64,000 bases of DNA from Anthoceros angustus. Taxonomy: Eukaryota > Plantae > Anthocerotophyta. How positions within the stretch are numbered: the stretch's first letter is position 1; every line of letters starts with the position of its first letter. The stretch is from the NCBI GenBank assembly GCA_010909165.1, contig MU008186.1, positions 372,001-436,000 on the forward strand. The letters are read 5' to 3'. The notes below the pieces were generated by a model. That model was not told the origin of the DNA. It was given only the letters and a program-made list of their open reading frames with translations, and ran no database searches. The position numbers and the translations under genes were made by a program. This document shows positions 658 through 51,756 of this stretch, piece after piece.

Positions 658-1979
658 ACAACATGCAGGGAGATAAACAATATGCTTCAAGACAACCTCT
701 TACAAATGTTCTACATGCGGGCTTTACTTCCACATAATAGAACATCTAGCTTACGGCGGTGCGCTTCCGGGCACTACCAAAATTTTGAGGTATTGTCATT
801 GTTACTGTGGTGAGTACTGTATTTTCTTTTAATGGTGCTTCCGGCATTTCAGCATATTGTGCTGCAATAGCCGTATGGGGTACTGCGCGTTGTGAACAGC
901 CCTCCACGGCGTCGCGAGGTCCGCGGTGCCCCACAAGCAGCCTACATAATGAGGGCCCGTAAAATGTGGATAGGGTTAGTGCTATGAATGGTGAATGTGC
1001 TGGGTCTCGGCGACATAAATTATTAGGGTTATGTGTAAATGTAATAACACACATGCTGAGAATCCCATGTTTTTGTGTGTTTATGTGCTAATGACTACCA
1101 GAGGGTACAGGTCTTGCGGTTGAACTATGTGTTTGTGTGAAAGTGTTAATAAGAGCGTTGCATAGTCCTAGAAAAATTTAGTTAGGAGATGTTTGAGCGT
1201 TGGTCTAATAAATATTTGGCCTACAGTACGAGCTGCCAATAATCTACTAATGATTATACCACAAATAATCTACTAATCTAAAATTTAATAAAAAGGTCTA
1301 GGATTACTAAGCTTGAGACGATTGACTAGCTGGTAGAGAGTGGATAGACACACAAGTCACGCTCGCTTGTATACTATCGGGTAGAACGCATGCATAAGAG
1401 AAAGAGGATGTTGAGTGACAAGCCAGGACGGCATGTCACCAAGGCCCGCATGTAGAATTCTACATTTATACATATGTACAACGAATCAAGCCTTCCATAT
1501 GTATTGTATACCTGCAGCGTGTACAGACAAGCTAGGGCCCACATCGGGCGGACCGTCAGGAATAATCATTCAATACCATGGGCCCTGGACCTTCAGACCG
1601 GGCCCTAGACTTTCAGACCGGGCCCCAGCCTTCGTCTTCAAATGATGAAAACGAAAGCTGCGGGACAACAATGATAGTGCTGATGTGAAGCAGCGCAAGA
1701 ACGGACGGCAGCCAATGCCAGCGTCCATTTTTTGATCCAACAATACAAGTCTCAGCGTAGGGCATGTGCACTAACGTGTTTCACTGGCAAATCTATCAGA
1801 TGCAAAACGCTGTGGCCCTCACCGCGTGTGTAGATGCCTTTCCAGACTTCACCTGGATCGGATCCTTCAGCCGCTACCGCATTCTGAAGTCTTGCCGTCA
1901 GCTGCACTGATCTTGAAGGAAATGCATACGGACAGCCAGGCCAACAATAGCCCATGCCCAATTTCCAACCTCTACATCG

Positions 1980-4900
1980 TCACTTCGACTTGGTCACATC
2001 TCGGCGCACTGTCAGTTTTTCTCTTCTCGCGCTGTCCCCATTCCCACCCTCAAAGGCTTCAAACTGGGCCTCGATGTCGTGTTCTGTAGCCTCTGATTGC
2101 TGTTCACCACCTGCTGTCGAACATGTAGATGTCTTCGGTAGTTTATCTTCAAAGTTCTTTGGGAAATTCAGCAGAGCGGCAGCTCCTAGCTCTTTGAACG
2201 CTGCTTTATCATAGGCGTGGGCTGCATCTATTGCAGACTTGAAATTTCCACAGTAGAAAGGCAGGTGATTCCTATCGTTGTAAAACATTGCATGATACAA
2301 GCCACCAGTCTCGCAGACACCATAATACTCACCTGTCCCCCCTGACAACGGGTGGTAACAACTTGCCGACCTTGGCAGCAGTTCCTCGGGAGACAGCTTC
2401 AGGTTAGGAGACTCTCCAAATTGCCAGAACCAGAGCTGATCATACACTCTAGCAGCCTCCTCCGCGGTTACAAAGGATCCCAGGTACGTGTGCCGTTTGG
2501 CAAGAGGGTTATAATATATACACTTAAACTTCATCCCATTAGAGTATACACCTTTGTAGTGCCGATGGAGTGTTTTCCCTGGCTTCCTTTGCCGACGTTT
2601 TCTCTCATCATCTGCAACTGGTAGATCGGCAGACTCTACCAAGGGCTTCGTCTTAACCACAAAAGGGCTATCATCCGCACTGATTGATCTTGTTTTAACC
2701 TCACGATCCTCGTCATATGCATCATCATTTTGCACCTCAAGCTTTTGGGATAACTTACTGCCACTACAAACCTTTCCCTGCTCCTCTTCGGGCAGTTTAC
2801 TTGATGGATGCGCCAACGACTTGACATTACAGGCAGATGATGGCCGCCACTGACGGTCATCAGATGCTTGTCCTACAATAACCTTCTTCCGAGTCTTCAC
2901 CCTCTGCTTCTTTGCTGCAGGAACGTTTAAACCATATCGCTCCGGAAAATTCAAGCGCTTTATGTTTCCGGACCGTTTAAACACCATGTCATCATAAGCC
3001 TTGGCTGCTTCTACTGCCGAGTCAAAGGTTCCCACATATATATGTTGTTTTGTTGCCGCCAAATACATTTTTGACTTGAAACGCCCTCCGGCCGTGGCCT
3101 GAACACCAATGTATGGACATCTTCTCGGTGGTCTTTTCAAGTCTGACCTTCCAGCCACATCTTTTCCAGAATCAGGTCCCGTTCCCACGTGCCTTTGGTT
3201 CTTGATTGAACTTGTGCCCTGCAATCGTTTCTCCAAAACTGTGCAGGAGTCGGTCTGTGGCCTTGAACCTATTCCTTCAGCTTGCTCATCGCTGTCACCA
3301 GCTGGACTCCTGACTGAATTACCTGCATCATCCTTAGGGCCATGGTTAAGCCTACTCTGACCTAGCATGGCTCTCCTTTTAGATGTTGTCTTGTAGATGC
3401 GGCCGTATTCAGACTTCAAGTCCTGGAACATGTATTCATCCACTGTCTCAGTTGACAATCCAGATGAAGTGCGTCTTCGGCGAAACTCATCTCCAGGCGT
3501 ATGTCCCCCTTGAGGATGTTGTTGATTGAACTCCTGTCCATCCTCTGAAAGGAGCTCATCACCACTGCTTGACAAAGAGTTATCGTGATGTAAAATAGAG
3601 CCACGCTTTCTTTTCAGCCTAGATCGATCAGCTGATTTGGAGAATCTCTTCAGCCTAGCATTTTCATATCCAGAGTCACTTGCATCTGAAGCAAAATCCT
3701 CTGAATCTGCCTCTTCAGATGCAGTATAGTCATCACTGAAGTTACTGTGATCACTCTGGGAAATATGTTGAGGTAGGTCTGCATAAGGAACGAAGCGGTC
3801 ATATTGGGAAGCCTCTTGAGGTGGGACTGCATAAGGAATGGAGTGATGATCCTGGGATATTTCTTGAGGTGGGACTGCATAAGGAATGGGGTCACCACTA
3901 CCACCACCGGGCACTGAGTTCAAATCCACATGACCTGACTTTCTTTTCAACCAATGAGCAATTTTCACAGCTCGGTCTCTGGCTCCACTGCCTTTGTTTG
4001 CCTTCAGATCAGCAACAGGCTTATGACTGTCCCTGGAAGCCAATGGAATGGGACCCTTGTCCTTTTGTGCAGAGGCTGCCCACTCGGGAAAGTTAAGGTG
4101 TGATGTAGCACCACACTGAACTGCTAGCTGATCCCGTGCACATGCAGCTTCAAGGTCAGTCTCAAACATACCCACGTATACCTTCCTCTTCTCATTTCTG
4201 TCGTAGAAACTTGCCTCATATCGTCCTGTGCTCCACTTCTTGGTCACACCGAAGAGCTTGTGATCACCACCACTAGTTTTTGGAACAGCTAATGCAGTAG
4301 CTCGCCCTGAGTCTGATGCTGATCGGCCACCAGTAGCTTGAACAACTAGACTCCTATCAGCCGACCCATGGGATGTCTTTAGATCTCTCGGAACTTGTCC
4401 AGGAATGGGAGTTCTCACAAGACCTGGATCACCCAGGGAGAAGCCTGCAGCAGCGCTAGGCACCTTCTTCCTATGCCGCCGTCTAGCAGGGCCAGTCTCT
4501 GGTTCACTGACCAGTTTTTGGTTCAACAGACCTGCTTTGCCCGTGTGAGTTCGTGACTTTCCACCACTCTGGCCTGGAGCTTCATCAGACTTTTGATGAG
4601 CTGCCGCGCCCGGAGAGGGCCCCTTCTGCTTGTTGCTGTCAACAATAACATTTGCAATCACCCGGTCCCTTGCAGTGACTGCCTCTTCCCTTGTGTCAAA
4701 CCTTCCGACGTAGATCATCTTTTTTGTCAGCTTATTATATACACTGGCTTCATACCTACCAGTATTGATTCTCCTTACACCAAGAGACCTACTTTCCTGA
4801 ACATATTTTTCCACCGATGAGCAATCAATGGGCTTTGACTGTCTACCTGAGCTCCGTGAAGTATTCACAACTGTAAGTTGATGAGGAGGTTTCAAAAGGC

Positions 4901-6404
4901 TCTGTTGATGAGTTCGTGAGATCCCTCGTGTTGGCGTATGGAGTCCCCTCCCCTCAGTATCCATTTCTGCGTCCATTTCAGTCTCAGTGGATGTCTCAGG
5001 ATGTGATTCCGGCACTCGTTCACCAGCACTACCTGGAACTGGCTCAACAGCCATGGCAGAGGCAGCAGGGGCGGCTGGCTTGACTGGAGAGCCTTGTTCA
5101 GCAGACACATCCTGCTCCTCCTGCATGTCACTCTGAGGCCAAGGTGATGGTAGTTCCGCATCCTCAGATCCTTCACCAAAGTTTGTGCTTGCACCTGTCC
5201 CACGAATTAAGCGAGCAGCATCATCGTAAGCACTTGCAGCAAGGGCCTCTGTATCAAAAGTGCCTAACCACACACGGCCTTCAGGGGTACATATCTCTGC
5301 TCCATACGTACCCCAGGGACGCCTCCGCACACCAACAAACTTGGAAAGTCCGCGCTGAGCAGACCCTCGCTTCTTTGAGGAAGAGTCGTTTCCACAATCC
5401 CTGCTCAGACAGCCAGACCCTGAAAGATCCATTCGCTCCATGTCTACCTGCTGCCATTTTACCGCTCTCGCCACACGAGACACCGAACACAGCCCTACTC
5501 TAGTCAGTTCCACAGGTCCGATATCAACTGCACCACCAACACTAAACCCAGCACGTTCCTGGCCAGGAGAGTCAGCCATAAGAAACGGAGGAGATGCTGA
5601 GAGAGGCAAACTCTCCAGAAACTTGGACGATTTTCTACTTCCTTTTCTTTCAGCAGAGAAGGCCGAGGGGCTACTATCCTGGCCAGCATCACCTGTACGG
5701 TGAGTCCCGCCATTGGAAGGATCAGGACACACAACATGTTCTTTCTTCAACCGTTTCGAAGGTCTGCAATCGAGCCTGAGCCCCTTGTCGGAAACAAAAT
5801 CACCTGGAGCAGAATCCGACAAGGAGCCTCTTTCTATAATATCCACATGGTGGGCAACCGAGGCTGCCATAACAACCACAGAAAACTCCCCCAGTGCCGA
5901 CGACTGTTTCATAACCTGCTTCCGTTTCAAGCCTGCAAAATTCTCCTTCATCGTTGAGTGCATCTGACAAAACCTGCACCAGGTTTCCACCACAGGGTCC
6001 ATGTTAACAAAGCACGGCCTCGAACAAGCGGTTCAAGAAGTCCAGGAAGCATGTGTGCTGCTAACTTTTCAAGCCACTTTGCACACGAGAGCGAGCAGTT
6101 TGGGACAGAACCTTGGATCTCTCGTCTTGAGATAAACCGAGAACTGGCACCGGACATTTGTCAAATTTTCCACATGGTCACACTGCTTGTAGGGAGCCTC
6201 GTGGTCTTCCAGTATGTGCCAGATACAGAACCGATACCCATGCACACGATAGTGACCACATTTCTGCCTAGAAGACTCGCAGAAGCCACTGCCATAACAT
6301 CGGGGCTTCTCCATTAACTTGCGCTCATATCTTGGAGTCCCGGATGGAGACATCGCTGGGACACCTTCTGTCGCACCTACAGCGATGGAATGCAAACCTT
6401 TCAA
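1980..6404 (-). CDS. zf-C3Hc3H (KANSL2/INO80D-like) plus six-AP2-domain protein, ~1,428 aa; exons 6404-6112 and 5973-1980
   Basis: Exon 1 encodes [30 protein letters not shown]. The GT-AG intron 6111-5974 joins in frame to give RFCQMH, completing the finger. Six AP2 folds (GV...Y/W-L/V-GxF...AAxAYD...NF) lie at about 5180-5345, 4660-4785, 4085-4260, 2945-3120, 2400-2570 and 2160-2330. Confidence 0.85.
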
Positions 6405-7033
6405 GACCCGAGCCTGATCAGCTCCTCATAACACGAATTGAACTCCTACCTTCTCCCGCCCCTGGCGACAGGCCCAGCCACGCCACAGTGCTCTAGAAGC
6501 TTCCGGGAACCTGCTCTCGAAGGAACTCCCGGTTTCTTTCACAGGCCAAATCAGGATCTAATGCGTTAAGTCCAGGATTCAACTTTCCTCCGAGTCCGCA
6601 CATCTTTTTGTGGAGCCGAGACCTAGCCCCCACAGTCTTGAGCTACCAATGCTCCCTCCAAAACGCATTTCTGTGTGGCGATCATGGACACAACATATTT
6701 CACGCTTCTTAAGGTCGTGGATCAAGTCGCAAACACTTCACCACAAGGACAGCCTCCGGCACCGCTCTTGGACACGAGAGCCGATCAAGTCACAAACGTA
6801 CACACATGCCCATTCTGGCTCGTCAAGCAAGATTGAATTACACGAGCGTTACGTGAATAAACCATGTCATTCCACTCTTACTATAGGTAATCAGTTCTAA
6901 AGAGTAATTATTAAGGTGATAATGGCAGCGGGCTCAGTTTTTTTTAGATTCCGCATGCCCGGCGTTCGAGAAACTGAAGTGAAAAAGATCAGGAGGCCAA
7001 TAGCTACATCCTTCCTTTTTGTTGGCGACGGGC

Positions 7034-9351
7034 TCACCCTTCCAGATCGGAAGAGAGGCCAGCAGCATACAAGTTTCCAGTCGCGAAGTAGGCTTCCCGT
7101 TCTGATGGAACTAGCTTGATGTCTCCCGTTCTGACATAGTGTTGGTAGCACATGAGGGCAAAGGAGATTGCCAGTGCGATGCAGTAGAATCCGAAGGCGT
7201 AGAACTGGTCGTGGATGGGCAGCTTGAGAGATGCCTGCACCGCATGCGAAATTTTGTGACGTAAGTACACAAGGAGAACATCTGGGAACTGAAAAGACAC
7301 AGTATGAGTTCAGGGACCGGAAGATGAAGAGACTTACAACCACTGCCTGGAGTAGAGACTGGATGATCAGGCCTGCAACTGAGTTGAGACTGAAGAGGAG
7401 AATGAATTGGCCGTTTGTGAGAGAGCGCGCACATTGCACATAGACAAGGCACAGGAGCAGTTGATTGATTCCTACAGCGATCACATAGGTTGGGTATGCA
7501 ATGGTGAGGGTACTGCTGGAAGCCATAAGGATGCAGAGGAATCCCACGATCCCAGAGCCGATGATGTACACAATGCCCCCTGTTTGGGCTGCAATCTTTG
7601 AAACTTGAACAGCTGCTAAAGCTGCAATGCATGCAGCTCCCTGGGCTGCTGCAATGACATGGCCGTTGAAGTTAGAGAGTGGATCGATCCCATCAAACAG
7701 GCTTGTGCCGTAGTTGGGGATCATAGCAAACCCAGCCGTTCCGAATGCCCACCTGTTCCAAAACACCAGGGTGATGCTATTTCAGTGGCTTGTAACAGCG
7801 AAGTAGAGGGCGAAGTACAAAACCAAACTTTTAACAGGATTTACCAAAGAGAGAGCAGACAGAGACTTTTGCTTCCCCAGGTTTCCCTCACAATGTTCAG
7901 GAAGCCCTGCAGCATGAAACACGATGTTCAATAGACCCTCTTTGCTAACCAGTCACGACAACTAGGTGACTGCAAATGTAGTCACATGCTGTGAGGCAAA
8001 TTCATGAGTATACCTGACGAGAGGAGCACAAGTTGGGGTCAAAGCGACCATCTCTTTGGAAATCTGGTGGTTCCCTTGGAAGTAGAAAGGAGGCCACACA
8101 AGCAATTGATACCTGCAAGGGCAGGAGAGGGGATCAATGAGTTACCACCAACAACAAAAGGTCAGCAAACATAACCCTGCACCTCCTACATTGTGTGTTT
8201 TCTGATTGACTCACCGATGCTATGGTGATATATAAATTGCTCACCAGTGAAAAGCCTCGATTTATAAGCAGCTGACCTGCAGCAACAACAGGAGTGACTT
8301 GGGATATATGTACATCGACGTAGTCATGCACACGGAAGAGTTATAAAGGTAATCTGGTGTCATTACTGGCAAGCTGCCAGGAGCCTTGGCCACGCAGAAT
8401 ACAACCTACCTATTTCAGCAGCGATTACAAACGAGGTGAGGGATGATGCTTGCGAGAAGCTTGTCTGCACATACATGCGAACACCACTCCTGAGAACTTC
8501 AGCGACGTGTCCCATCCACAAACTTGAGCTGATATGGAGGGACCTATCTTACCAGCAGTTGATAGTCTTCCTCAGCCACCAGCAAAAACAGGTAGGATGA
8601 GAAAACCACATCTGAGGCTGTTCCGAGACCATATGTGACCTTCAAGACGAAGAACACGTACATCAGAGAATTGCCAGGGTGTATCAGGTATCCAGTCTCT
8701 CACCAGGTATCGAGAGAAGAACCTGCATGAGCTGCATGGACAGCAAAGACGTGCCCGAAAGCAAGATAACGAATGTTGCTAACCGTCCTAAAGTACCTGC
8801 CAAGGTCATAACATTTACCTTCATCAGGAGCTCTCAACGACACATTTCGAAAAACTAAAACTTCTCTCTCTCCAACTACAATCAAAGCATCAGCCATTAC
8901 GATCCAGCAATTAAGCTGCTACTCACCTACCAATTATGATGACAGTGCGGTAAGAGAGGATGGAACAAGCCGGGACAGCCAGCAACGTGAAGCACAGCAT
9001 TGAGTAGACTCCAACCGGGAAAATGTTCCTGCTGACCTGTCAAACATCCGCAAGCTCCTCAAACCTCAGCTCACACCAAATCTCAGCTCAGACTGACATT
9101 CCAATGCAATCCAGTCGCATAATGCACCGCTATGGAGTCCAGCTGCCTCTTACCTCATCATTCGTGAATTGCTTATCTCTGGTGAGGTAAGGGACCAGAT
9201 ACGGCTCCGACGGCTCAAATTGCAGACACATTGTGAAGAAGGTGAGCAGCAGAAGCAATTGCCATGGCCCCTCCCTCCAAAAGTAACCAATTTCGCTGAA
9301 GAATGACATGCTTCTTTGCTCGCCGACCACAGCAACCTCAGCTACAGCCAT
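7034..9351 (-). CDS. SLC19 (reduced folate carrier / thiamine transporter) family MFS protein, multi-exon
   Basis: Motifs FEPSEPYLVPYLTRDKQFTNDEV-SRNIFPV, YGLGTASDVVFSSYLFLLVAEEDYQ, NGHVIAAAQ, FSLNSVAGLIIQSLLQ and LKLPIHDQFYAFGFY parallel SLC19A1-3; GT-AG introns. Confidence 0.8.
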
Positions 9352-31008: not shown

Positions 31009-34000
31009 TCAGCCTTGCTTGCCTTTTGGGATGCTTTCATTCCCAACCTGAAAGCTATGCACCAGTCCGTCCCTGTCTGCCCACCAGCTCTGACCCGGCT
31101 GCTTCCGGGCCCTGATTCGTTTTCTCCTTGCCTGCAACTCCTGTGCCTGCTCCCACATCTGGGCACCAGTGTATAAGTTGCACATTACCACATACGCTGA
31201 GACATCTTGCTTGTCTAGCTTCACTGCTTGCTCAAAAGCATAGCGTCCCACCTCCACGTTGCTCCACTTGCGACACGAACCCAAAAGTGTATGCCAAACC
31301 GCAGGATCAGGCACTACTGGCATGGTTTTCACCAAAGCTAGCGCTTCATCCAGTCGGCCTGCACGGCCCATAAGGTCCACCATGCATGTGTAATACTCCA
31401 CTGTGGGTGTGATGCCGAAATGTCTGCTCATCGCGTCAAAATACTCGAGCCCTTCACTCAATAGCCCCGTGTGACTGCACACCTTCAGCACAGCAGCGAA
31501 CGTGTGGCCATCTGGCTGTGTGCCATCTTGTACCATTCTAAGCACCAAGCGAAAGACCTCTTCACCGTCTCCCTGATGACTGTACCCTGCAATTAGTAAA
31601 TTCCAGGCCACAAGGTGCCTTTGAGGCAATGTTTCGAACACCTGCCGTGCATCAACCATGCTTCCAGACCGTGTGTACATGTTTATCAGACTCCCGGCTA
31701 CAAACTTATCGGCTCGAAGCCCTTGTTCTTCAATCTGCGCGTGCAGCTCCCTCCCCAAATGCAAAGCTGCCACATTAGCACAGGCCTGCAGAAGGCACAC
31801 GAAAGTCACAGAGTTGGGTACAGCGATGCCTTCGTTCTGCATAGCCCTGTACAGATGAAGGGCTTCCTGGCCCATCCCCTGCTGGGAGTACCCTGCAATT
31901 AGGGCAGTCCACGTCACCACATCTTTTTCACCAAGTCCGTCAAACACTGCTCGGCCGTCTTCCAAGCTGCCACACTTTGCATACATGTTCACCAAACTGC
32001 TGGCTACAAACACGTCAGCTTGGAGTCTTCTTTCTCTAATTTGTGCATGAAGCCGCTTCCCTATATCCAAAGCTTCGGTGCCCAGACTTGCACATGCCTG
32101 TAGGAGGCACACCAGGGTCACGGAATTCGCCACTGCCATCTCATCCTCTTGCATCGCACTGAAGAGTTGAAGGGCTTGCTGGCTCATGCCCCACTGAGAA
32201 TATCCTGCAATTAGAGCAGTCCATGCCATCACATCTTTTTGACCAAGTCCATCAAACACACTCTGAGCATCCTCTAAGCTGCCACACTTTCCGTACATGT
32301 TTATCAAACTGCTCGCTAGTACCATATCAGTTTGATGTCCTCGTTCTCTGATCTGCACGTGGAGCTCCTTCCCCATCTCTAACGCTGGTGTGCCAACACT
32401 TGCACATGCCTGCAGGAGGCACACAAATGTCACAGAATCAGGTTCCGCACCGTCTTGTTGCATATCAGTGTAAACTTGCAGAGCTTCCAGGCCCATGCCC
32501 TGCTGAGAGTACCCTGAGATCATGGCATTCCACGCAACCACGTCTTTTTCAACAAGCCCATCAAACACTCTGTGAGCATCTTCCAGGCTGCCACATTTTG
32601 CATACATGTTGACCAAACTGTTGGCTACGAAGACATCCCCCTCATGTCCATGTTCTCTGATCTGAATATGAAGTTCCTTCCCCTTTTCCAACGCTAGGCT
32701 GCCGACACTAGCACATGCCTGCAGGAGGCACACAAATGTCACAGAGTTGGGTGCAACGATGCCATCTTGTTGCATGGTGCTGTAAAGATCAAGAGCTTCC
32801 TGCCCCATGCCCCGCTGGGAATATCCTGCTATCATGGCACTCCATATCACAACATTTTTGTCACCAAGTCCATCAAACACACCCCGAGCATCCTCTAGGC
32901 TGCCACATTTAGCATACATGTTCACCAAACTGCTGGCTACAAACACATGGCCTTGAAGCCCTTGATCTGTAATTTGCAGATGAAGCTGCCTCCCATTCTC
33001 CAGAGCTTGGGTGCCCACGCTTGCACACGCCTGCAAGAGGCACACAAATGTCACAGAATCAGGTACGGCATTGGGATCTTTCTGCATAGCACTATATAGA
33101 TGAAGGGCTTCCTGGTTCATGCCATGCTGGGAATACCGTGCTATCATTGCATTCCACATTGCGACATCTTTTTGACCAAGTCCGTCAAACACTCTTTGAG
33201 CATCTTCCAAGCTTCCACACATAGCATACATGTTCAACAAACCGTTGGCTAAACGCAAATCAGTTTCCTCTCCTATTTTTCTGATTTGTGTATGAATCTG
33301 TTTCCCCTTCTCCAATGCTGGGCTACCCACACTTGCACATGCCTGCAAGAGGCACAGAAGTGTCACGGAATCAGGTACAACCATCCCATCTTCTTGCATG
33401 ACACTGTGAAGATGAAGGGCTTCCTGACCCATGCCTTGCTGGGAATATCCTGAGATCATGCCATTCCAAGTTACCACATCTTTTTGACCAAGTCCGTCAA
33501 ACACTTTGTGGGCATCTTCTAGGCTGCCACACTTTGCATACATGTTTACCAAACTGTTGGCCACAAAGATGTTAGCTTGGTGTCCTAGCTCTTTTATCTG
33601 TATATGAAGCTGCTTACCGTTCTCAAGAGCTGGAGCCCCGACACTTGCACATGCCTGGAGGAGGCACACAAAAGTCACAGAATTGGGAACAGAGATGCCG
33701 TCTTCTTGCATATCCTTGTACAGGCCAAGGGCTTCCCGGCCCATACCCAGCCGGGAATACCCTGCAATCAGAGCAGTCCACGACACGACATCTTTCTCCC
33801 CAAGGCCGTCAAACACTCTTTGAGCGTGTTCCAAGCTGCCACATTTTGCGTACATGTCCATCACGCAATTACAGACAAACAAATCACGCTGAAACCGGCT
33901 GGCCAATACATCAGCATGCACCTCCTGCCCAGATTCCAAATCTGCTCCCTTCCCACAAGCCTGGAGAGCTGCCACAAACACATGACCATCCGGCTCCACA

Positions 34001-34713
34001 CCTGACCCCCGCATCCGACGATACAGTTGCATGGCCTGCTTGTCTTGCCCGTGCTTAACATGGGCACATATCATGGAGGACCACATGAAAGCATCTGGTT
34101 TGGCCACCAGGGTAAACACATCCATCGCGTCTTGCAACCTGCCATGAGAAACATACATTCGCAGGATGTGGTTGCACAGGAACGTATCCGGCTGATATCC
34201 CGTCGCAACCGTGAATGCATGGACCCGACGACCCAGAACAAGATCTTTCTTCACCACACATTGCTTCAGGACAGTGTAAAAAACAGACGTGGAAACGCAA
34301 CAGTCTCTCTGCACCAGAAGTCCCAAAGCCTCCACAGCCTCGGTGAGATGGCCCTGATGACATAACGCGCTCACAGTTTCAGCCGTGACGACCCTTTCGT
34401 ATCCTGCGGGCCTGGCATCACTCGCCAGGCTCCAGTCAGATTCCCTCATCGCCACATCCACCGAAAACAGTAGCTCCAAGCGAGGATCTTCCGCGACAGA
34501 TCCGTGACCAGTCAGACGTCCTCCTTGACGACCTAGCTTTCTTGCCAAGGTGCTGACACTTGCTGCCTCCTTGTTCGTCAACGATCGGTCCTTTGAATTC
34601 AGGCGAGCGGGAGCTCTTCCTGGAACACCAATTTGCTGGCTCCACCAACACGGTCCCCCCAAGGTGTCCGGTGGTCCTTTCCGTGGATCCATTAGCATGC
34701 CCCAGACAGCCAT
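31009..34713 (-). CDS. PLS-class PPR protein with E1-E2 and truncated DYW (PGQSWW box, E+ type); putative organellar RNA editing factor
   Basis: 1,234-aa intronless ORF of P-L-S triplets, then CSHTG, YTCMVDLMGRAG, E1/E2 and KQPGQSWWADRDGLVHSFQVG; no HxE/CxxC/DYW. Confidence 0.93.
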   Translation of the reverse strand: MAVWGMLMDPRKGPPDTLGGPCWWSQQIGVPGRAPARLNSKDRSLTNKEAASVSTLARKLGRQGGRLTGHGSVAEDPRLELLFSVDVAMRESDWSLASDARPAGYERVVTAETVSALCHQGHLTEAVEALGLLVQRDCCVSTSVFYTVLKQCVVKKDLVLGRRVHAFTVATGYQPDTFLCNHILRMYVSHGRLQDAMDVFTLVAKPDAFMWSSMICAHVKHGQDKQAMQLYRRMRGSGVEPDGHVFVAALQACGKGADLESGQEVHADVLASRFQRDLFVCNCVMDMYAKCGSLEHAQRVFDGLGEKDVVSWTALIAGYSRLGMGREALGLYKDMQEDGISVPNSVTFVCLLQACASVGAPALENGKQLHIQIKELGHQANIFVANSLVNMYAKCGSLEDAHKVFDGLGQKDVVTWNGMISGYSQQGMGQEALHLHSVMQEDGMVVPDSVTLLCLLQACASVGSPALEKGKQIHTQIRKIGEETDLRLANGLLNMYAMCGSLEDAQRVFDGLGQKDVAMWNAMIARYSQHGMNQEALHLYSAMQKDPNAVPDSVTFVCLLQACASVGTQALENGRQLHLQITDQGLQGHVFVASSLVNMYAKCGSLEDARGVFDGLGDKNVVIWSAMIAGYSQRGMGQEALDLYSTMQQDGIVAPNSVTFVCLLQACASVGSLALEKGKELHIQIREHGHEGDVFVANSLVNMYAKCGSLEDAHRVFDGLVEKDVVAWNAMISGYSQQGMGLEALQVYTDMQQDGAEPDSVTFVCLLQACASVGTPALEMGKELHVQIRERGHQTDMVLASSLINMYGKCGSLEDAQSVFDGLGQKDVMAWTALIAGYSQWGMSQQALQLFSAMQEDEMAVANSVTLVCLLQACASLGTEALDIGKRLHAQIRERRLQADVFVASSLVNMYAKCGSLEDGRAVFDGLGEKDVVTWTALIAGYSQQGMGQEALHLYRAMQNEGIAVPNSVTFVCLLQACANVAALHLGRELHAQIEEQGLRADKFVAGSLINMYTRSGSMVDARQVFETLPQRHLVAWNLLIAGYSHQGDGEEVFRLVLRMVQDGTQPDGHTFAAVLKVCSHTGLLSEGLEYFDAMSRHFGITPTVEYYTCMVDLMGRAGRLDEALALVKTMPVVPDPAVWHTLLGSCRKWSNVEVGRYAFEQAVKLDKQDVSAYVVMCNLYTGAQMWEQAQELQARRKRIRARKQPGQSWWADRDGLVHSFQVGNESIPKGKQG

Positions 34714-37744: not shown

Positions 37745-40700
37745 TTAACATGTATTTTGAGTTTCATTTTCTTCCTCGTCGCTACCGAACTTGTCTGCAG
37801 CTATAAATAAGGGTTTTTGTTCTGGTTGGGGAGGCCCTTCATCTCCAACCAAAAAGCTGTGTACAATTCCGTCCATGTCTGCCCACCAGCTCTGACCCGG
37901 CTGCTTCCAGGCCCTCGCTCTTGTTCTCCTAGCCTGCAACTCCTGGGCCTGCTCCCACATCTGGGCGGCGGTGTATAAGTTGGACATCAACACATATGCT
38001 GCTGCATCTTGCTCGTCCAACTCCACTGCTTTTTGGAAGGCATAGCGTCCCATCTCCACATTGTTCCACTTCCGACAAGCACCCAGCAGAGTGTGCCAAA
38101 CTGCAGCATTCGGAGGGACCGGCATTGTGCTCACCATATCGAGTGCCTCATCCAGCTGGCCTGCCCGGCCCAGGAGGTCCACCATGCATGTGTAGTGCTC
38201 CACACTGGGAGTGATCCCAAATTGCTTGCTCATGGCCTCGAAGCATTCTCTCCCCTTGTCTACCAGGCCCGTGTGGCTGCAGACAGTGAGTACACTGAGG
38301 AATGTGATGCCGACTGGATCTGTGCCAGCTTCTCTCATTTTCTGCAGCAAATCGAGCACCACTCTGCTGTTTCCTTGGCAGCTGTAGCCGGCAATCAAAG
38401 CACTCCAGGCGACAACATCTCTGTTCGGCAATGCATCAAAAACCTGCTGTGCATCCGCCATGCTCCCAGCCTTGGCATACATGTTTATCAAGCTGCTGGC
38501 GATGACGACGTCGGCTTGAAGACCCTGTTCTTCGATCTGTGCATGTAACTGCCTTCCCAGATGCAAGGCTGCCACATTTGCACATGCCTGCAAGAGGCCC
38601 AGAAAGGTGACGGAATTGGGCACAGCAATGCATTCTTGTTGCATTGCACTGTAAAGAGAGAGGGCTTCATGCCCCAGGCCCTGCTGGGAGTATCCCGCTA
38701 TCATGGCATTCCATGTTACCACATCCTTTTCACCGAGTCTATCGAAGGCTCGCTGAGCATCTTCCAAGCTGCCACACTTTGCGTACATGTTTACCAGGCT
38801 ACTGGCTACAAACACATCAGCTTCGTGTCCTTGTTCTCGAACTTGTGCATGAAGCTGCTTTCCCATCTCCAATGCCGAGGTGCCGATGCCTGCACATGCC
38901 TGCAGGAGGCACACAAATGTGACGGAATCAGGCACAGCTATGCCTTCGTCTTGCATTGTGCTGTAAACACGAAGGGCTTCCTGTCCCATGCCTTGCTGGG
39001 AGTACCCTGAGATCATGGCATTCCAGGTGACCACATCCTTTTGAACGAGGCCGTCGAACACACTCTGAGCATCTTCCAAGCTGCCGCACTTTGCATACAT
39101 GTTCACCAAGCTGTTAGCAACAAACACGTCAGTTTGAAGGCCTCGTTCTCTGATTTGCGCATGGAGCTGCTTCCCCTTCTCCAGTGCAGAGGTGCCCAAA
39201 CCGGCACATGCCCGCAGGAGGCTTACAAATGTGATGGAATCAGGTGCAGCGATGCCTTCATCTTGCATGCTACTGTAAAGGCAGAGGGCTCTATTGCCCA
39301 TGCACTGCTGGGCATACCCGGCTATCATGGCATTCCATGTCACCACATCTTTCTGACCCAGTCCGTCAAACAATCTCTGAGCATCTTCCACGCTGCCACA
39401 CTTTGCATACATATTCACCAAGCTGTTGGTTATAAACACATCAGCTTGATGTCCCCGTTCTCTGATTTGAGCATGGAGCTGCTTCCCCATCTCCAAGGCT
39501 GGGGTGCCCAAACTTGCACATGCTTGCAGGAGGCAAACAAATGTGACAGAATTAGGTACAGCCATGCCTTCTTCTTGCATAACACTGTAGAGGTGAAGGG
39601 CTTCCTCGCCCATGCCCTGCTGGGAATATCCTGCAATCATGGCATTCCATGTTGCGACCTCTTTTTGACCTAGGCGGTCAAATACTCTCTGAGCGTCTTC
39701 CAAGCTGCCACACTTTGCATACATGTTCACCAAACTGCTGGCCACACATCAGCTTGATGTCCTCGTTGTCTAATTTGTGCATGTATCTGCTTCCCCGTCT
39801 CCAGCGCCGTCGTGCCCACACTTGCACATGCCTGCAAGAGGCAGACAAACGTCACAGCATCGGGCACGGCAATCCCCTCTTCTTGCATGGCACTGTATAG
39901 ATGAAGGGCTTCCTGCCCCATGCCCTGCTGGGAATACCCTGCTATCATGGCAGTCCACGCCACGACATCTTTGTCAGCAAGTTCTTCAAACGCTTTGCGC
40001 GCCTCTTCCAAGCTGCCACACTTTGTGTACATATTTATCAAACTGCTGGCTACAAATTCCTCAGCTTGACTTCCTCGTTCTCGAATCTGCATATGAATTT
40101 GTTTTCCCTGCTTCAAAGCAGGGGTGCCCACAGTTGCACATGCCTGCAGAAGGCACACAAATGTCACCGAATTGGGTACGGCAATGCCTTCATCTTGCAT
40201 GACACTGTAAAGCTGAAGGGCTTCCTCGCCCATGCCCTGCTGGGAATATCCTGCAATCATGGCATTCCATGTTGCGACCTCTTTTTGACCTAGGCGGTCA
40301 AATACTCTCTGAGCGTCTTCCAAGCTGCCACACTTGGCATACATGTTCACCAAACTGCTGGCCACACACACATCAGCTTGATGTCCTCGTTGTCTAATTT
40401 GTGCATGTATCTGCTTCCCCGTCTCCAGCGCCGTCGTGCCCACACTTGCACATGCCTGCAAGAGGCAGACAAACGTCACAGCATCGGGCACGGCAATCCC
40501 CTCTTCTTGCATGGCACTGTATAGATGAAGGGCTTCCTGCCCCATGCCCTGATGGGAGTACCCTGCTATCATGGCAGTCCACGTCACGACATCTTTGTCA
40601 GCAAGTTCTTCAAACGCTTTGCGCGCCTCTTCCAAGCTGCCACACTTTGTGTACATATTTATCAAACTGCTGGCTACAAATTCCTCAGCTTGACTTCCTC

Positions 40701-42852
40701 GTTCTCGAATCTGCATATGAATTTGTTTTCCCTGCTTCAAAGCAGGGGTGCCCACAGTTGCACATGCCTGCAGAAGGCACACAAATGTCACCGAATTGGG
40801 TACGGCAATGCCTTCATCTTGCATGACACTGTAAAGCTGAAGGGCCTGCTGCCCCATGCCCTGCTGGGAATATCCTGCAATCAGAGCAGTCCAAGTCACC
40901 ACATCTTTTTGACCAAGTCCGTCAAACACTCTCTGAGCATCTTCAAGACTGCCACACTTTGCATACATGTTCACTAGACTGTTGGCTACAAACACATCAG
41001 CTTGATGGCCGTGTCCCCTAATTTGCACATGAAGCTGCTTCCCCATCCCCAAAGCTGATGTGCCCACACTTGCACATGCCTGCAGCAGGCACACAAATGT
41101 CACAGAATTGGGTATAACGATGCCTTCTTCTAGCATCACGCTGCAGAGACGAAGGGCTTCCTGGGCCATGCCTTGTTGGGAATACCCTGCAATTAGAGCA
41201 GTCCATGTCACCACATCCTTTTGAGCAAGTCCATCAAACACTCTCTGAGCATCTTCCAAGCTGCCACACTTTGCATACATGTTCACCAAACTGCTGGCTA
41301 CAAACACGTCAGGTTGATGACCTTGGTCTCTGATTTGCGCATGAAGTTGCCTTCCATTCTCCAATGCTGCGGCGCCCAAACCTGCACATGCCTGCAGGAG
41401 GCCCACAAACGTAACTGAATCAGGTGCTGCGATGCCTTCTTCTTGCATGATACTGTACAGACGAAGGGCTTCATGCCCCATGCCCTGCTGTGAATATCCT
41501 GCTATCATGGCATTCCAGGTTACCACATCCTTTCGACCAAGTCCGTCAAAAACTCTCTGAGCATCCTCCACGCTGCCGCACTTTGCATACATGTTCACCA
41601 AACTGTTGGCCACAAACACATCAGCTTGATGTCCTCGATGATTAATTTGCGCATGCAGCTCCTTCCCCTTTTCCAACGCCAGGTTGCCCACACTTGCACA
41701 TGCCTGCAGGAGGCACACAAAAGTAACGGAATCAGGTACAGCCCTGCCTTCCTCTGCCATAGCACCGTACAGAGCAAGGGCTTCCTGGGCCTTGCCCTGC
41801 TGGGAATATCCTCCGATCATGGCATTCCAGGTCACTACATCCTTGACAACAAGTCCGCCAAACACTCTCTGTGCGTCTTCCAAACTGCCACACTTGGCAT
41901 ACATGTTCACCAAGCCATTACCCACAAACAAATCAGGCTCACCACCCCTGGCCAACACTTCAGCATGCACCTGCTGCCCAGTTTTCAAGTCTGATCCCCT
42001 TGCACAAGCCTGCAGGGCTGCAACAAACACATGCCCATCTGGCTTCACACTCGACCTGCACATGCGATGATATAGTTGTATGGCCTGCTTCTCTTGCCCC
42101 TGTTTCACATGGGCAGAGATGATGGCAGACCAGGTGAAGGCATCTGGCCTGTCAACCTCTGCAAACACATCCATCGCGTCCTGCAACCTGCCATGGGAAG
42201 CATACATCCGCAAGAAATGGTTGCACAGGAACGTATCCGACTGGTATCCCTTCCTCACCGCCAAAGCATGAACCCGACGACCCAGAACCAGATCCTTCCT
42301 CTCTGCACATTTCTTCAGGGCATCAGAAAACAGAGATTTGGAAACACAACAGTCTCTCTGCACCAAAACCCCCAAAGCCTCCACAGCCTCAGTCATGCAG
42401 CCTTCATAACATAGCTTGCTCACGGTTTGAGTCGTTACCTCTCTTGCGTATCCTCTGTACCGGTCACAACCCAGCTCCATCCCCCCATCCATCTCCATAC
42501 CCACACCCATATCCATGTCCATACCCATACCCACACCCACACCTACGGCATCGACAACCCAAGCTGGCTTGTACAGTTTGTTTAACCACAGGACCTCCGG
42601 GGAAAATTGAGTCGAATTCTGGCTCTGCTTAACATGCCTGTTATCCCGCCAAACCAGGCATCCTCCTGGACAGCCTGGATTTCTTTCAAAAACACTGCAG
42701 ATTGCGGCTTCCTTGTTTCCCACTGCCTGGTTCGTTGAGCCAGGCGACCGGGAGCTCTTCCTGGAACACCTGCTAACCCGCAGCGAGATCGGATCCATGA
42801 AAACCGTCCCAACAATGGATCCTGCTGCTCTTTGCAGACAGCCATTGCACAT
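37745..42852 (-). pseudogene. Very long PLS-E+ PPR (~1,700 aa if repaired), split by a 4-nt deletion at ~39745; pseudogene or assembly error
   Basis: ORFs 39727-42864 and 37745-39745 form one PLS array; gccacacacacatc at 40361 versus gccacacatc at 39741; C-terminus WKQPGQSWWADMDGIVHSFLVGD. Confidence 0.85.
39595..40845. repeat. 624-bp intragenic tandem duplication (two 104-aa PLS triplets)
   Basis: Near-identical shadow ORFs offset by 624 (39770/40394, 39777/40401, 39901/40525). Confidence 0.9.
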
Positions 42853-43124
42853 GCTCGCACGCACGCATTAGCAAAGGCATTCGCTGCCTGCCGACACTGT
42901 CAAGCTTTGGTGTACTTAAGAACAGATGAGTGAAAACGCATAGGTACATACAAATAGGGGGTACCTTCGTACGCGAATCACGAATAAACGAATCACATGG
43001 TTAATCCACGAAACGCATCTCGTAGCATTCCGGCCTGGCACTGGCCTGTCTGGAGGCGCGGCTTCCTGGCTGGCTGGTTGCATCTCTTTCGACAAGCGAG
43101 GTGGCAAGGAAACAGCGCGGAAAG

Positions 43125-48953: not shown

Positions 48954-49473
48954 GACTCTCTAGCAGTTACGCGCACCAATTTCAGCCCAACACTTCGCTT
49001 CGGTTTCAGCCTGAGCCACTTGTAGCTATAGCCCAACAGGATATTGACCAGTGAGAGAACGCCATGTGGATTTGATTAACCGGGACTTTGCGGGCGGATA
49101 TGACACGCTGGACCCAATGTAGACTGGGAGCATGCTGGCCTTGGTGAGAACTTGAACCTGAGGTAGGCATGGATACCACAGCACAGAATGAAGAGATTCC
49201 AGCAGCTGTGGTTCGAGACTGTGTGGAAGGTAAGTCATGTGTGATGTCTGCCCTCTCTTATCAAACTTTTGTGGGCATCCGAGGCATTCCAGTCCTCGCT
49301 CGATCATGCAGGACCTTTCTTTTTTTCATTGTGGAGAAGAGCTGTTTCTATGCAATCGCTCTCTGGATGTGAAGATACCTATGCAACGCTGAAACAACTA
49401 CCAAGCCTTGACCTCAGCCCGGCCAAGACGATGTCTTGCCAGGAGCTCTTGGGTCGACACTTCTCTCTGGACC

Positions 49474-51756
49474 ATGCACCTTGGGATGGCAGGCAACATA
49501 CGAAGAGCGCTAAACAATCTGTACAGGCCAGCTCGGGTGAATGCGCAGCCGGCTGCACTGGATTTGCAGATGGGTCGTCGTGCACTTGTATCCGCCTGGA
49601 GAGTGCCGGATGGTCACGACCCTGGCAGGCCTACAGGATATCCAAGGGGCGTGACGGCTGAAGCCGTGACCCACCTGTGTGAGGAGGGGCAGCTCAGCGA
49701 GGCTGTTGAGGCTCTGGGCGTTCTGGTGCAGGCAGGATGTCGTATTTGCCGATCTCTTTTCTACAGAGTCATCAAGAGATGTGTTCTTCAAAGGGATCTG
49801 GTTCTGGGTCGCCGTGTCCATGCTCTCACTGTGGAAGGGGGATATGAATCGGACACGTTCTTGTGCAACCACGTTCTGCGAATGTATTCTTCTCATGCCA
49901 GGTTGCAAGAAGCGATGGATGCTTGTGCACTGGTGGCCAAACCAGATGCTTTCATGTGGTCCTCCATTATCTCTGCCCATGTTAAACACGGACAAGATAA
50001 GCAGGCCATACAACTCTATCATCGGATGTGCATGTCAAGTGTGAAGCCAGATGGGCATGTGTTTGTAGCCGCCCTTCAGGCTTGTGCAAGGGCAGCAGAC
50101 TTGAAAACTGGGCAGCAAGTGCATGAGGATGTGTTGGACAGTGGAGTTGAGCTTGACTCCTTCGTCTGTAACACCTTGGTAGACATGTATGCAAAGTGTG
50201 GCAGCCTGGAAGAAGCTCGAAAAGTCTTTGACGGACTCAGTCAAAAAAATGTGGTGACATGGAATGCCCTGATAGCAGGGTATTCCCAGCAGGGTATGGG
50301 ATGGGCAGCCCTTCATCTTTACGGTGCTATGCGAGAAGAAGGTGTTGCCTCACCCGATTCTGTGACGTTTATGTGCCTCCTTCAGGCATGTGCAAGTGTG
50401 GGGAGTTCCGCTTTGCAGGAGGGGAGGCAGCTTCATACACAAATTAGAGAACAAGAATACCAAGCTAATGTGTCTGTAGGCAACAGCTTGGTAAACATGT
50501 ATGCAAAATGTGGCAGCTTGGAAGACGCTCAAAAAGTGTTTGACGGGCTCTCTCAAAAGGATGTTGTCACATGGACAGCTTTGATAGCAGGATACTCCCA
50601 GCAAGGCATGGGCCAGGAAGCCCTTTGTCTTTACGGTGCTATGCAAGAAGAAGGCATGGCCGCCCCTGATTCTGTGACATTCGTGTGCCTCCTGCAGGCA
50701 TGTGCAAGTGTGGGCGCCCTGGCTTTGGAAAAGGGGAAACAGCTTCATGCCAAAGTTAGAGAACGAGGACTTGAAGCTGATGTGTATGTGGCCAGCAGCT
50801 TGGTAAACATGTATGCGAAGTGTGGCAGCCTAGAGGACGCACGAAATGTGTTTGACAGGCTTGGTGGAAAGAACGTGGTAACCTGGACTACTCTGATTGC
50901 AGGATATTCCCAGCAGGGAATGGGTCAGGAAGCTCTTCATGTCTACAGTGCCATGGGAGAAGAAGGGGTTGTGCCACCCGATTCCGTCACATTTGTGTGC
51001 CTCCTGCAGGCATGTGCAAGTGTGGCAGCTTTGCATGTCGGAAGGCAGCTTCACGCACAGATTGAAGATCGAGGGCTTCAAGCTGATGCAACTGTGGCCA
51101 TTGGCTTGATCGACATGTATGCAAAATCAGGGAGCATGGTTGATGCACAGCAGGTGTTTGATGAGATGTCCAAAAGAGATGTTGTCGCCTGGACTGCACT
51201 GATTGCAGGATATACCCGTCAAGGAGACAGTGAACAGGTCTTTCAGCTGGTTCTCAGAATGAGGGAGGACTGTATACAGCCAGACAGCGTCACATTCCTC
51301 AGTGTGCTAACAGTGTGTAGTCATACAGGCCTAGTGAACGAGGGGCGAGAGTACTTTGAGGCTATGAATAGAGACTATGGCATCACTCCCATGGTGGAAC
51401 ACTATGCATGCATGGTGGATCTCCTGGGTCGTGCAGGCCTACTGGATGAGGCACTAGAGGTGGTGAGGACAATGCCTGTACAGCCTGATGCTACAGTTTG
51501 GTGCGCACTACTGGGTGCTTGTCAAAAGTGGAGCAGCGTGGAGGTGGGACTCCATGCTTTTGCTGAGGCAGTGAAGTTAGACAGAAAAGATGCTGCAGCA
51601 TATGTGTTGATGTCCAACATATATGCGGGTGCCCAGATGTGGGAGGAGGCACAAGAGATGCAGGTGAGGCGAACAAGACTAAGGGCATGGAAGGATCCCG
51701 GACAGAGCTGGTGGACAGACAAGGACGGACAGGTGCACAGGTTTGGTTGGGGATGA
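49474..51756 (+). CDS. PLS-E+ PPR protein (PGQSWW box); putative RNA editing factor
   Basis: Intronless PLS array, E1/E2 and WKDPGQSWWTDKDGQVHRF; first ATG at 49474, ORF open from 49408. Confidence 0.9.
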   Translation: MHLGMAGNIRRALNNLYRPARVNAQPAALDLQMGRRALVSAWRVPDGHDPGRPTGYPRGVTAEAVTHLCEEGQLSEAVEALGVLVQAGCRICRSLFYRVIKRCVLQRDLVLGRRVHALTVEGGYESDTFLCNHVLRMYSSHARLQEAMDACALVAKPDAFMWSSIISAHVKHGQDKQAIQLYHRMCMSSVKPDGHVFVAALQACARAADLKTGQQVHEDVLDSGVELDSFVCNTLVDMYAKCGSLEEARKVFDGLSQKNVVTWNALIAGYSQQGMGWAALHLYGAMREEGVASPDSVTFMCLLQACASVGSSALQEGRQLHTQIREQEYQANVSVGNSLVNMYAKCGSLEDAQKVFDGLSQKDVVTWTALIAGYSQQGMGQEALCLYGAMQEEGMAAPDSVTFVCLLQACASVGALALEKGKQLHAKVRERGLEADVYVASSLVNMYAKCGSLEDARNVFDRLGGKNVVTWTTLIAGYSQQGMGQEALHVYSAMGEEGVVPPDSVTFVCLLQACASVAALHVGRQLHAQIEDRGLQADATVAIGLIDMYAKSGSMVDAQQVFDEMSKRDVVAWTALIAGYTRQGDSEQVFQLVLRMREDCIQPDSVTFLSVLTVCSHTGLVNEGREYFEAMNRDYGITPMVEHYACMVDLLGRAGLLDEALEVVRTMPVQPDATVWCALLGACQKWSSVEVGLHAFAEAVKLDRKDAAAYVLMSNIYAGAQMWEEAQEMQVRRTRLRAWKDPGQSWWTDKDGQVHRFGWG

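Follow-up and report, generated by a model that had tools for sequence, protein, structure and literature searches.

A subgroup of the AP2/EREBP proteins that combines a zf-C3Hc3H finger with three AP2 domains, with or without a B3 or an Agenet domain, has been described in Taxus, Ginkgo, Marchantia and Physcomitrium (Zhang et al., 2019; PMC6781369). Two of the Physcomitrium proteins carry the finger on the N-terminal side of the AP2 domains and are without B3, and the repeats R1, R2 and R3 were reported to have evolved separately (PMC6781369). No other paper naming these proteins was retrieved in a literature search. Few large groups of plant transcription factors, the zf-C3Hc3H/multi-AP2 family among them, have both disappeared from flowering plants and gone without any functional study; its members combine as many as four types of module that bind nucleic acid or chromatin on a single chain. 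No member is known to have been assayed for DNA binding, localization or partners. Several AP2 folds per chain are also found in WRI1, in the AP2/ANT proteins and in protist and apicomplexan multi-AP2 proteins, as in the protein reported here. However, such double- or multi-AP2 proteins (WRI1, AP2/ANT, protist) have no zinc finger, and their repeats lie close together with a conserved linker. KANSL2 and INO80D, subunits of animal and fungal chromatin complexes, are without AP2 domains; the Pfam zf-C3Hc3H domain is their sole likeness to this protein, none being seen outside the finger.

The window, a stretch of 64,000 nucleotides of Anthoceros angustus DNA, contains on its minus strand a gene that belongs to the zf-C3Hc3H/multi-AP2 subgroup of AP2/EREBP (TcA3Bz1-like group). 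It is a nuclear, three-exon gene of a land plant, with a product of 1,411 residues. What is new is that six intact repeats are present, against at most four in the other members examined, and that there is no B3; the architecture itself is not a new class. The initial annotation had put the number of AP2 domains in AP2/ERF proteins of land plants at one or two, which is contradicted by the three-AP2, finger-bearing land-plant proteins of PMC6781369. The same paper already describes the architecture that had been put forward as possibly novel. Of the proposed uncharacterised regulator class in seedless plants, the lack of functional work stands, but the family was described by sequence in 2019 and also includes the gymnosperms Taxus and Ginkgo (PMC6781369).

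Two open reading frames are present on the minus strand, one of 111 residues (6069..6404) and one of 1,340 residues (1980..6002). It had been predicted that they are joined by a 138-nt GT-AG intron which on removal supplies the last FCxxH of the finger, and spliced transcript contigs across 5974-6111 confirmed this. Contigs of the runs X1 (same organism), X2 and X20 (related species) skip exactly 6111..5974, and the X1 contigs spanning this junction have 0 mismatches to the window. The labelling of the runs as RNA was a guess; that X1, X2, X15 and X20 hold RNA follows from the splicing of their contigs. This second intron (5974..6111) is of phase 2 and splits an Arg codon as AG|G, so that DPR is followed in frame by FCQMH. 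The coding sequence (6353..6112 joined to 5973..1980) comprises 1,411 codons and encodes the finger and the six AP2 domains. The TTG of the 111-residue frame is not the start: translation starts with the ATG at 6353-6351, with an in-frame TAG upstream in the spliced leader. A further GT-AG intron of 73 nt (6377..6449; GT 6449-6448, AG 6378-6377) lies in the 5′ UTR and is skipped in X1 and X15 contigs. Exon 1 (6450..6728) is 5′ UTR only, as judged from contig coverage and from the TAG, and exon 2 (6112..6376) holds the end of the leader, the ATG and most of the finger, according to sequence, Pfam and contigs. The coding part of exon 3 (1980..5973), seen in the reading frame, the sequence and the contigs, comprises 1,330 codons and the stop codon at 1982-1980. 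X1 contigs match the window exactly and extend beyond 1700 by 15 nt and beyond 6700 by 28 nt; a single X20 contig of 5,036 nt, which reaches from 1979 past 6700 and lacks both introns, includes the finger exon together with the six AP2 units. On these contigs the whole mRNA extends from about 6728 to about 1685 (ends approximate), with the 3′ UTR at 1685..1979 in the X1 contig (end approximate).

A decaying or chimeric gene, be it a pseudogene, a transposon-derived frame or two genes misjoined, might also show the long branch that the window gene has in the family tree, and a word-index search returned a single orthologue. In addition, run X15, from a fourth species, gave one contig that retains intron 2, which would terminate the protein within the finger, next to one spliced loose end. 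Nevertheless, a frame of 1,340 codons is open, it is intact in the transcript contigs of four species, in all of which spliced transcripts are found and in one of which a single contig crosses everything, and the X20 indels all sum to multiples of three. The orthologue P0001 (locus L001), from another organism, has the same gene layout; its overall identity is 51-56%, yet the six AP2 units are almost invariant while the linkers have freely diverged. The transcript contigs and the orthologue alignment already contradict decay or chimerism, which we regard as extremely improbable. P0007, a 185-residue C-terminal match, was left out of the alignments: it departs from P0001 almost exclusively by changes of the C-to-T type and looks like a contig of bisulfite-treated DNA.

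The finger is an N-terminal double zinc finger; its first part (6112..6281, Pfam PF13891) consists of a C3H, then a C-x-x-H and then two Cys. In the Pfam scan of the 111-residue frame it scored 43.9 bits (cut-off 27) over profile positions 1-59 of 62, only the last residues of the finger being absent. In the last part (5958..5973), placed by the reading frame, the Arg is completed and followed by F-C-Q-M-H; family members end in R-F/Y-C-Q-x-H, and the window finger fits the pattern of the family alignment. The position and phase of intron 2 are the same in the orthologue locus L001 and in a paralogue locus, L002, where the same finger Arg codon is split. Behind the finger lies a family-specific motif (LGEFS...AASVAHHV, 5844..5894), which aligns immediately behind the fingers of the Marchantia, Physcomitrium, fern and L002 proteins. 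Two further blocks are conserved: one ahead of the first AP2 domain (5463..5525), which is invariant against P0001 and falls within the alignments to the L002 protein (P0004), Marchantia and Physcomitrium, and one ahead of the fourth (3360..3425), where the alignments to Marchantia, Diphasiastrum, P0004 and Ceratopteris begin, in colinear fashion.

KANSL2 depends on its second ZF-ZF for binding the other NSL subunits in mouse cells, and no DNA binding of KANSL2 was seen (PMC10456878). By analogy, docking of a protein partner is the more likely role of the plant finger, rather than DNA binding; the KANSL2 requirement makes such docking plausible, without indicating which plant partner would be bound. 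A more specific reading is that the finger couples the array of AP2 domains with an NSL-type histone acetyltransferase or an INO80-type remodeller, a complex that would thereby be recruited to specific sequences. This would agree with the score of the finger above the Pfam threshold for the KANSL2/INO80D domain, with the behaviour of the KANSL2 ZF-ZF, and with the Agenet domain, of chromatin-reader type, in some family members. On the other hand, having a domain in common with a complex subunit is not the same as binding to the complex, outside the finger the Pfam scan of the short frame gave no further feature characteristic of KANSL2 or INO80D, and the finger frame had no meaningful match by sequence among solved structures. 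Recruitment of either complex is considered unlikely.

The initial annotation had counted six AP2 folds, the first ERF-like and the other five divergent, and this count was borne out. With the two frames scanned separately, both AP2 (PF00847) and zf-C3Hc3H (PF13891) were above their Pfam cut-offs, the long frame reaching 74.4 bits for AP2. When the units (D1 to D6) were scanned singly, AP2 was the top Pfam family for each, with 38.7, 22.8, 16.7, 19.7, 14.3 and 14.4 bits, and D1 alone exceeded the cut-off of 33.3, against 14.3-22.8 bits for D2-D6. The latter five are backed by structure profiles and models: all matches among solved structures were AP2 only, for D2, D5 and D6 singly and for D3-D4 as a pooled profile, and two AlphaFold models covering D2-D6 contain five clean beta-beta-beta-alpha units according to DSSP, that is, the three-stranded sheet on one helix of the AP2/ERF fold. 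D1 (5163..5342) has 70-73% identity with its counterpart in every family member. D2 (4608..4787) occurs only in the window gene and its orthologue; it matches WRI1 at 8.2e-6 and has a pLDDT of 79-93. The model of D3 (4068..4259) superposes on AtERF1 (1gcc) with Z 8.5 and an rmsd of 2.4 over 60 residues, and its sequence is 55-62% identical to D3 of Diphasiastrum, Physcomitrium and P0004. For D4 (2928..3116; pLDDT about 90) Z was 10.7 with WRI1, 10.4 with TEM1 and 9.9 with AtERF1 (1gcc); in this matching each solved chain was paired once, to D4. D5 (2382..2561) is a beta-beta-beta-alpha unit with 98% identity in P0001, and the orthologue profile matches WRI1 at 5e-11 and AtERF1 at 2e-8. D6 (2148..2330) lies 17 residues past D5, with profile matches to ERF096 at 1.6e-9 and AtERF1 at 5e-9, and is again beta-beta-beta-alpha, with a pLDDT of 74-83. 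The WRI1 structure aligns across two neighbouring repeats of the models. The linkers between D1 and D6 are long, of low complexity and rich in basic clusters.

It is likely that the locus as a whole is a transcribed zf-C3Hc3H/multi-AP2 family gene which encodes a putative DNA-binding regulator and is a B3-less copy that arose after duplication. We propose that the protein would act sequence-specifically. D1 would read an ERF-type site, and D2-D5, whose sheet is basic although the ERF contact residues are missing, would read other short sites, so that a composite or clustered target may be recognized. D6, with its acidic sheet, may not bind DNA. Alternatively, only D1 binds DNA and D2-D6 are protein- or RNA-binding modules, the protein being a scaffold and not a multivalent DNA reader. 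AP2 folds can serve anew in RNA or ribosome binding, and the structural matches of middling Z include Toxoplasma mitoribosomal proteins and dsRNA-binding domains. When the alignment is read by eye, most of the Arg and Trp residues with which AtERF1 (1GCC) contacts DNA are missing from D2-D6; the D6 sheet has 2 Lys/Arg only and is net acidic. However, D2-D5 have sheets with a positive net charge (+3 to +5), sequence as well as structure comparison match D2-D6 best to the DNA-bound AP2 domains of WRI1, AtERF1, ERF096 and TEM1, and the dsRNA-binding domains match at Z < 5 and are called common by the tool. A scaffold is for these reasons regarded as quite improbable, and the DNA-binding regulator is kept as the preferred reading.

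In an exhaustive HMMER search of 1.84 billion representatives the top named matches after the orthologue were proteins of Diphasiastrum, Marchantia (PTQ32953), Physcomitrium, Adiantum and Ceratopteris, all with zf-C3Hc3H and AP2 and with or without B3 or Agenet. The word-index protein search with the long frame missed the family: it gave only the orthologue and a protist multi-AP2 protein, P0002, which has AP2 repeats alone in common with the window protein (23% identity over 30% of the query). Angiosperm matches (Festuca, Capsicum, Solanum, Liquidambar) in which 5-8 AP2 domains occur have no finger and were not counted as relatives; they may be fused tandem ERF gene models. The motifs of the window gene are colinear with those of the liverwort, moss, lycophyte and fern members of the family. 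These results correct the literature in two respects: the family extends beyond bryophytes and a few gymnosperms to a lycophyte and ferns, and its AP2 counts exceed the three obtained from standard domain searches. The window protein has the finger N-terminal of the AP2 domains, at least three (six) of these, and a D1 above the AP2/ERF gathering score. No B3 or Agenet was found in it by Pfam, which places it with the B3-less members; the RAV layout of one AP2 with a C-terminal B3 does not apply, there being no B3 anywhere in the protein.

Among these B3-less members, Physcomitrium patens A0A7I4A7U5 (P0009) and Ceratopteris KAH7307870 (P0016) likewise carry the finger N-terminal of the AP2 domains, and they have the post-finger motif, the block ahead of D1 and an ERF-like D1 (72-73% identity) in common with the window gene; D3 of A0A7I4A7U5 is 55% identical to the window D3. 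Yet by the family profile they have two repeats, and three according to PMC6781369, compared with six in the window gene, and they do not group with it in the tree. Proteins of the TcA3Bz1 type (Taxus TcA3Bz1, Ginkgo Gb_05581, Marchantia PTQ32953.1/OAE18760.1, Diphasiastrum KAJ7519683-9) have the same finger and motif order, and repeats orthologous to D1, D3, D4 and D5, all four of which are found in Diphasiastrum at 50-71% identity. In contrast to the window gene, they carry a B3 ahead of the finger (in Marchantia also an Agenet), and they have four strong AP2 repeats without D2; the long Marchantia model has two weak partial ones elsewhere. The best match of each of D1, D3, D4 and D5 was its family counterpart, and D2 and D6 had no counterpart in the members compared. 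Per-domain phylogeny, a check suggested in the initial annotation, succeeded in part: D1, D3 and D5 form clades with their counterparts, but D4 found no settled place. D2 was nested in the D3 clade and is a duplicate of D3. A weak segment behind D5 in Marchantia is closer to D5 (z 9.7) than to D6 (z 6.3).

The paralogue P0004, from the same sample as P0001, consists at L002 of a B3 exon, a finger exon and an AP2 frame. In a whole-protein family tree made by a quick method it is the nearest relative outside the orthologue pair (support 86). It has the identical phase-2 intron inside the finger as well as, in the part ahead of its C-terminal region, D1, D3 and D4, but it keeps B3 and is without D2. 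The absence of B3 from the window gene is supported by its transcript, whose 5′ end is at about 6728 and whose leader contains a stop codon, by a different, folate-carrier-like frame directly upstream, and by the B3-bearing paralogue in the sample of the orthologue. As the B3-less Ceratopteris copy is sister to that plant's own B3-bearing copy, B3 has been lost more than once. A B3-zf-AP2 ancestor probably duplicated in the lineage of the window gene, whereupon the window copy, which also carries D6, would have lost Agenet/B3 and gained D2 from D3, and would then have evolved fast outside its domains. The window copy is a clean natural variant, B3-less and with six strongly constrained intact repeats, that can be compared with sister genes in the same genome, although the practical value is modest for now.

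It is a doubtful further step that this lineage-specific duplication of an Agenet-B3-finger-AP2 ancestor produced a distinct regulator, which shed B3/Agenet and carries the largest intact AP2 array known in land plants (six, namely five likely DNA-binding domains and the acidic sixth), with a finger docking a chromatin complex and a valency perhaps tuned by an exitron in D1. The possible exitron (5195..5311) is a GT-AG segment of 117 nt on the minus strand whose in-frame removal takes out 39 residues, the core of D1. It was seen in one 57-nt X1 contig at a depth of 8.7, against 25.7 for the unspliced form, a weak signal from a single run.

The initial annotation had read two minus-strand open reading frames (ORFs), a finger and six AP2 folds joined by an intron, as one gene. 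Both ORFs were present as named, a short one of 111 aa (6069..6404) and a long one of 1,340 aa (1980..6002). Pfam placed zf-C3Hc3H (PF13891, hereafter the finger) in the short ORF with 43.9 bits (cut-off 27), and AP2 (PF00847) in the long ORF with 74.4 bits. As the finger match covers only profile positions 1-59 of 62, the short ORF lacks the final finger residues. Removal of 138 nt (intron 2, 6111..5974; GT at 6111-6110, AG at 5975-5974) splits an Arg codon (AG, then G) and brings ...K-T-R-D-P-R in frame with F-C-Q-M-H. Splicing was followed in contigs of four public sequencing runs placed on window positions 1700-6700; those of X1 were identical to the window, and X2, X15 and X20 represented three related organisms, most of whose contigs were 90-95% alike. 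A precise skip of 138 nt, with ends CT..AC on the plus strand, was seen in one contig each of X1, X2 and X20, so that the proposed GT-AG intron is removed exactly. Because the contigs are spliced, the runs hold RNA; the RNA label itself is a guess. A single 5,036-nt contig of X20 extends from 1979 to past 6700 with both introns gone, which shows that the finger exon shares one mRNA with the six AP2 units. The indels listed for X20 all sum to multiples of three and the reading frame is therefore kept across species.

The other intron, also known from the transcript contigs, lies in the leader (6449..6377, minus strand, 73 nt, GT-AG). The first ATG is at 6353-6351 and is preceded by an in-frame TAG in the spliced leader. 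Both introns and this ATG give a coding sequence at 6353..6112 plus 5973..1980 on the minus strand, 4,236 nt in length (1,411 codons and a stop). The overall gene thus stood as first described, but its TTG start at 6404 falls in the intron/leader. Apart from such small corrections of the gene ends the original observation is confirmed. In X15 a contig was found that keeps intron 2 (depth 10.6), with a loose end reading into exon 3. In this retained form (window 5946-6138) a stop follows 14 codons on, within the finger, and the product would be about 95 residues long, without the last zinc ligand. Besides, a 57-nt contig of X1, the sole run showing it, joins 5312 to 5194 and marks a candidate exitron (5195-5311, minus strand; GT-AG, 117 nt, in frame) with depth 8.7 versus 25.7 unspliced. 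The 39 residues that it would remove make up almost the whole ERF-like first AP2 unit.

In searches and folding the two exons were analysed separately. When the six units (D1-D6, from N- to C-terminus) were scanned singly, AP2 was the top Pfam family for every one (38.7, 22.8, 16.7, 19.7, 14.3 and 14.4 bits), with only D1 above the 33.3-bit cut-off. Aligned with each other, the units follow the usual Y-x-G-V ... G-x-F ... A-A-x-A-Y-D ... N-F-P pattern. When D1 was excluded, a profile built from D2-D6 plus their orthologues matched AP2 proteins and nothing else in the full set of solved structures (WRI1 3.8e-22, ERF096 3.4e-16, AtERF1 2e-14, TEM1 4e-8); single-unit profiles gave 1.6e-9 for D6, 5e-11 for D5 and 8.2e-6 for D2. 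AlphaFold2 models of D4-D6 and D2-D3 contained five clean three-strand-plus-helix units (pLDDT 74-95) with disordered linkers. Modelled D4 was superposed on WRI1 (Z 10.7), TEM1 (Z 10.4) and AtERF1 (Z 9.9), modelled D3 on AtERF1 (Z 8.5, rmsd 2.4 over 60 residues), and the two WRI1 domains span D2 and D3; structure matching returned one alignment per solved chain, and the single-unit superpositions are those of D3 and D4. The Pfam ranking, the structure-profile matches and the models of D2-D6 bear out six AP2 folds, and the AP2 domain count of the protein is six.

The word-index search yielded one close relative, the orthologue P0001 (1,313 aa; identity 51% with BLASTP and 56% when aligned with MAFFT). 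On its contig the finger ORF scored 40.6 bits in Pfam, the layout equals that of the window gene, and a GT...AG intron lies in the same Arg codon, followed by R-Y-C-Q-M-H. In their pairwise alignment the sequence is almost invariant within each of the six AP2 units and within a few short blocks, and the linkers can barely be aligned, a pattern expected from purifying selection on the domains. One unit, about 17 linker residues long (I-P-Y-A-V-P-P-Q-E ...; window 3768-3887, minus strand) occurs in about three copies versus one in P0001, and X20 has a 12-nt ACC-repeat insertion adjoining it at 3899. The Logan protein P0007 (185 aa) differs from the P0001 C-terminus by numerous A>V, T>I, R>C/W and P>L substitutions and is otherwise identical to it. 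Such substitutions are what C-to-T conversion would produce, and the protein was probably called on a contig of bisulfite-treated DNA.

A literature search on the pair zf-C3Hc3H and AP2 returned a single paper (Zhang et al., 2019; PMC6781369), and among the papers searched no other names these proteins. That study describes a 'new subgroup' of AP2/EREBPs, function given as unknown, in which TcA3Bz1 (Taxus), Gb_05581 (Ginkgo) and PTQ32953.1 (Marchantia, additionally with Agenet) combine B3, zf-C3Hc3H and three AP2 domains, and two Physcomitrium proteins carry the finger N-terminal to three AP2 domains without B3. A profile built on the AP2 part was run exhaustively with HMMER against 1.84 billion representatives, and the best named matches after the orthologue were KAJ7519686 of Diphasiastrum and P0011 of Adiantum (both B3, finger and AP2 in Pfam), PTQ32953/BFI35611 of Marchantia (Agenet, B3, finger, AP2), A0A7I4A7U5 of Physcomitrium (finger, AP2) and two Ceratopteris proteins, one with B3 (P0017) and one without (P0016). 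The window protein and its relatives have a colinear order in common: finger end, LGEFS...AHH motif, pre-D1 block, D1, D3, pre-D4 block, D4 and D5. Since this family was already described, though functionally untested, the architecture is not the uncharacterised regulator class that had been proposed; what is new within the zf-C3Hc3H/multi-AP2 family is a form with six repeats and no B3. If the window gene is from a hornwort, the family occurs in each of the three bryophyte groups as well as in lycophytes, ferns and some gymnosperms.

The repeats differ between members. Best matches identified counterparts of D1, D3, D4 and D5 in Diphasiastrum (71, 60, 50 and 56% identity), of D1, D4 and D5 in the short Marchantia model, of D1 and D5 in ferns, and of D1 and D3 in the Physcomitrium representative. 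By the all-family repeat profile, six full repeats are confined to the window gene and P0001. Diphasiastrum has four, and the long Marchantia model OAE18760.1 has four strong repeats along with two that are weak and partial. Its fourth strong repeat (residues 1282-1340; the weak ones are at 1771-1813 and 2079-2116) is a D3 counterpart, whereas three AP2 domains were counted for this gene in PMC6781369. In the domain tree D2 fell inside the D3 clade (support 94) and the position of D6 was left unresolved. A quick whole-protein tree put the window gene and P0001 on a common long branch, sister to P0004 (support 86), a paralogue from the same sample as P0001 (contig L002, 2402-7013). There B3 and the finger each occupy an exon, the AP2 ORF comprises D1, D3 and D4, and the phase-2 finger intron of about 312 nt lies in the same finger codon as in the window gene. 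These relations point to a lineage-specific duplication, after which the window copy lost Agenet/B3 and came to carry six repeats. In the same tree the B3-less Ceratopteris copy (KAH7307870) was sister to its own B3-bearing copy, which implies that B3 was lost more than once.

The gene is expressed, and its frame and domains are conserved. DNA recognition by AP2 domains is known from AtERF1 on the GCC box and from WRI1 on DNA. D1, in which most ERF-type contact residues are retained, probably binds an ERF-like site. The sheets of D2-D5 are net basic (+3 to +5) and carry different residues at the contact positions of the repeat alignment; these units probably read other short sites. D6 may lack DNA binding, because its sheet has a net charge of -1 with only two Lys/Arg. 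The linkers are long, with many basic clusters, and would allow the array to bind dispersed or clustered sites. For the finger a role as a protein-docking module is favoured; the link to a chromatin complex proposed in the initial annotation is a hypothesis of low probability.

The window has a GC content near 50%, which would suit a hornwort, as would the shortness of the two introns (73 and 138 nt) and the number of intronless PPR genes. A folate-carrier-like ORF (6897-7766, minus strand; a match of 58.9 bits to the C-terminal half of reduced folate carriers) ends about 170 nt upstream of the mRNA 5' end of the AP2 gene on the same strand. Four long intronless PPR ORFs are also present, at 31009-34713, 37745-39745 and 39727-42864 on the minus strand and 49408-51756 on the plus strand, three of them with an E motif (PLS/E-type; four or more such genes within 64 kb). 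The second and third overlap at their ends and may be one frameshift-broken gene.
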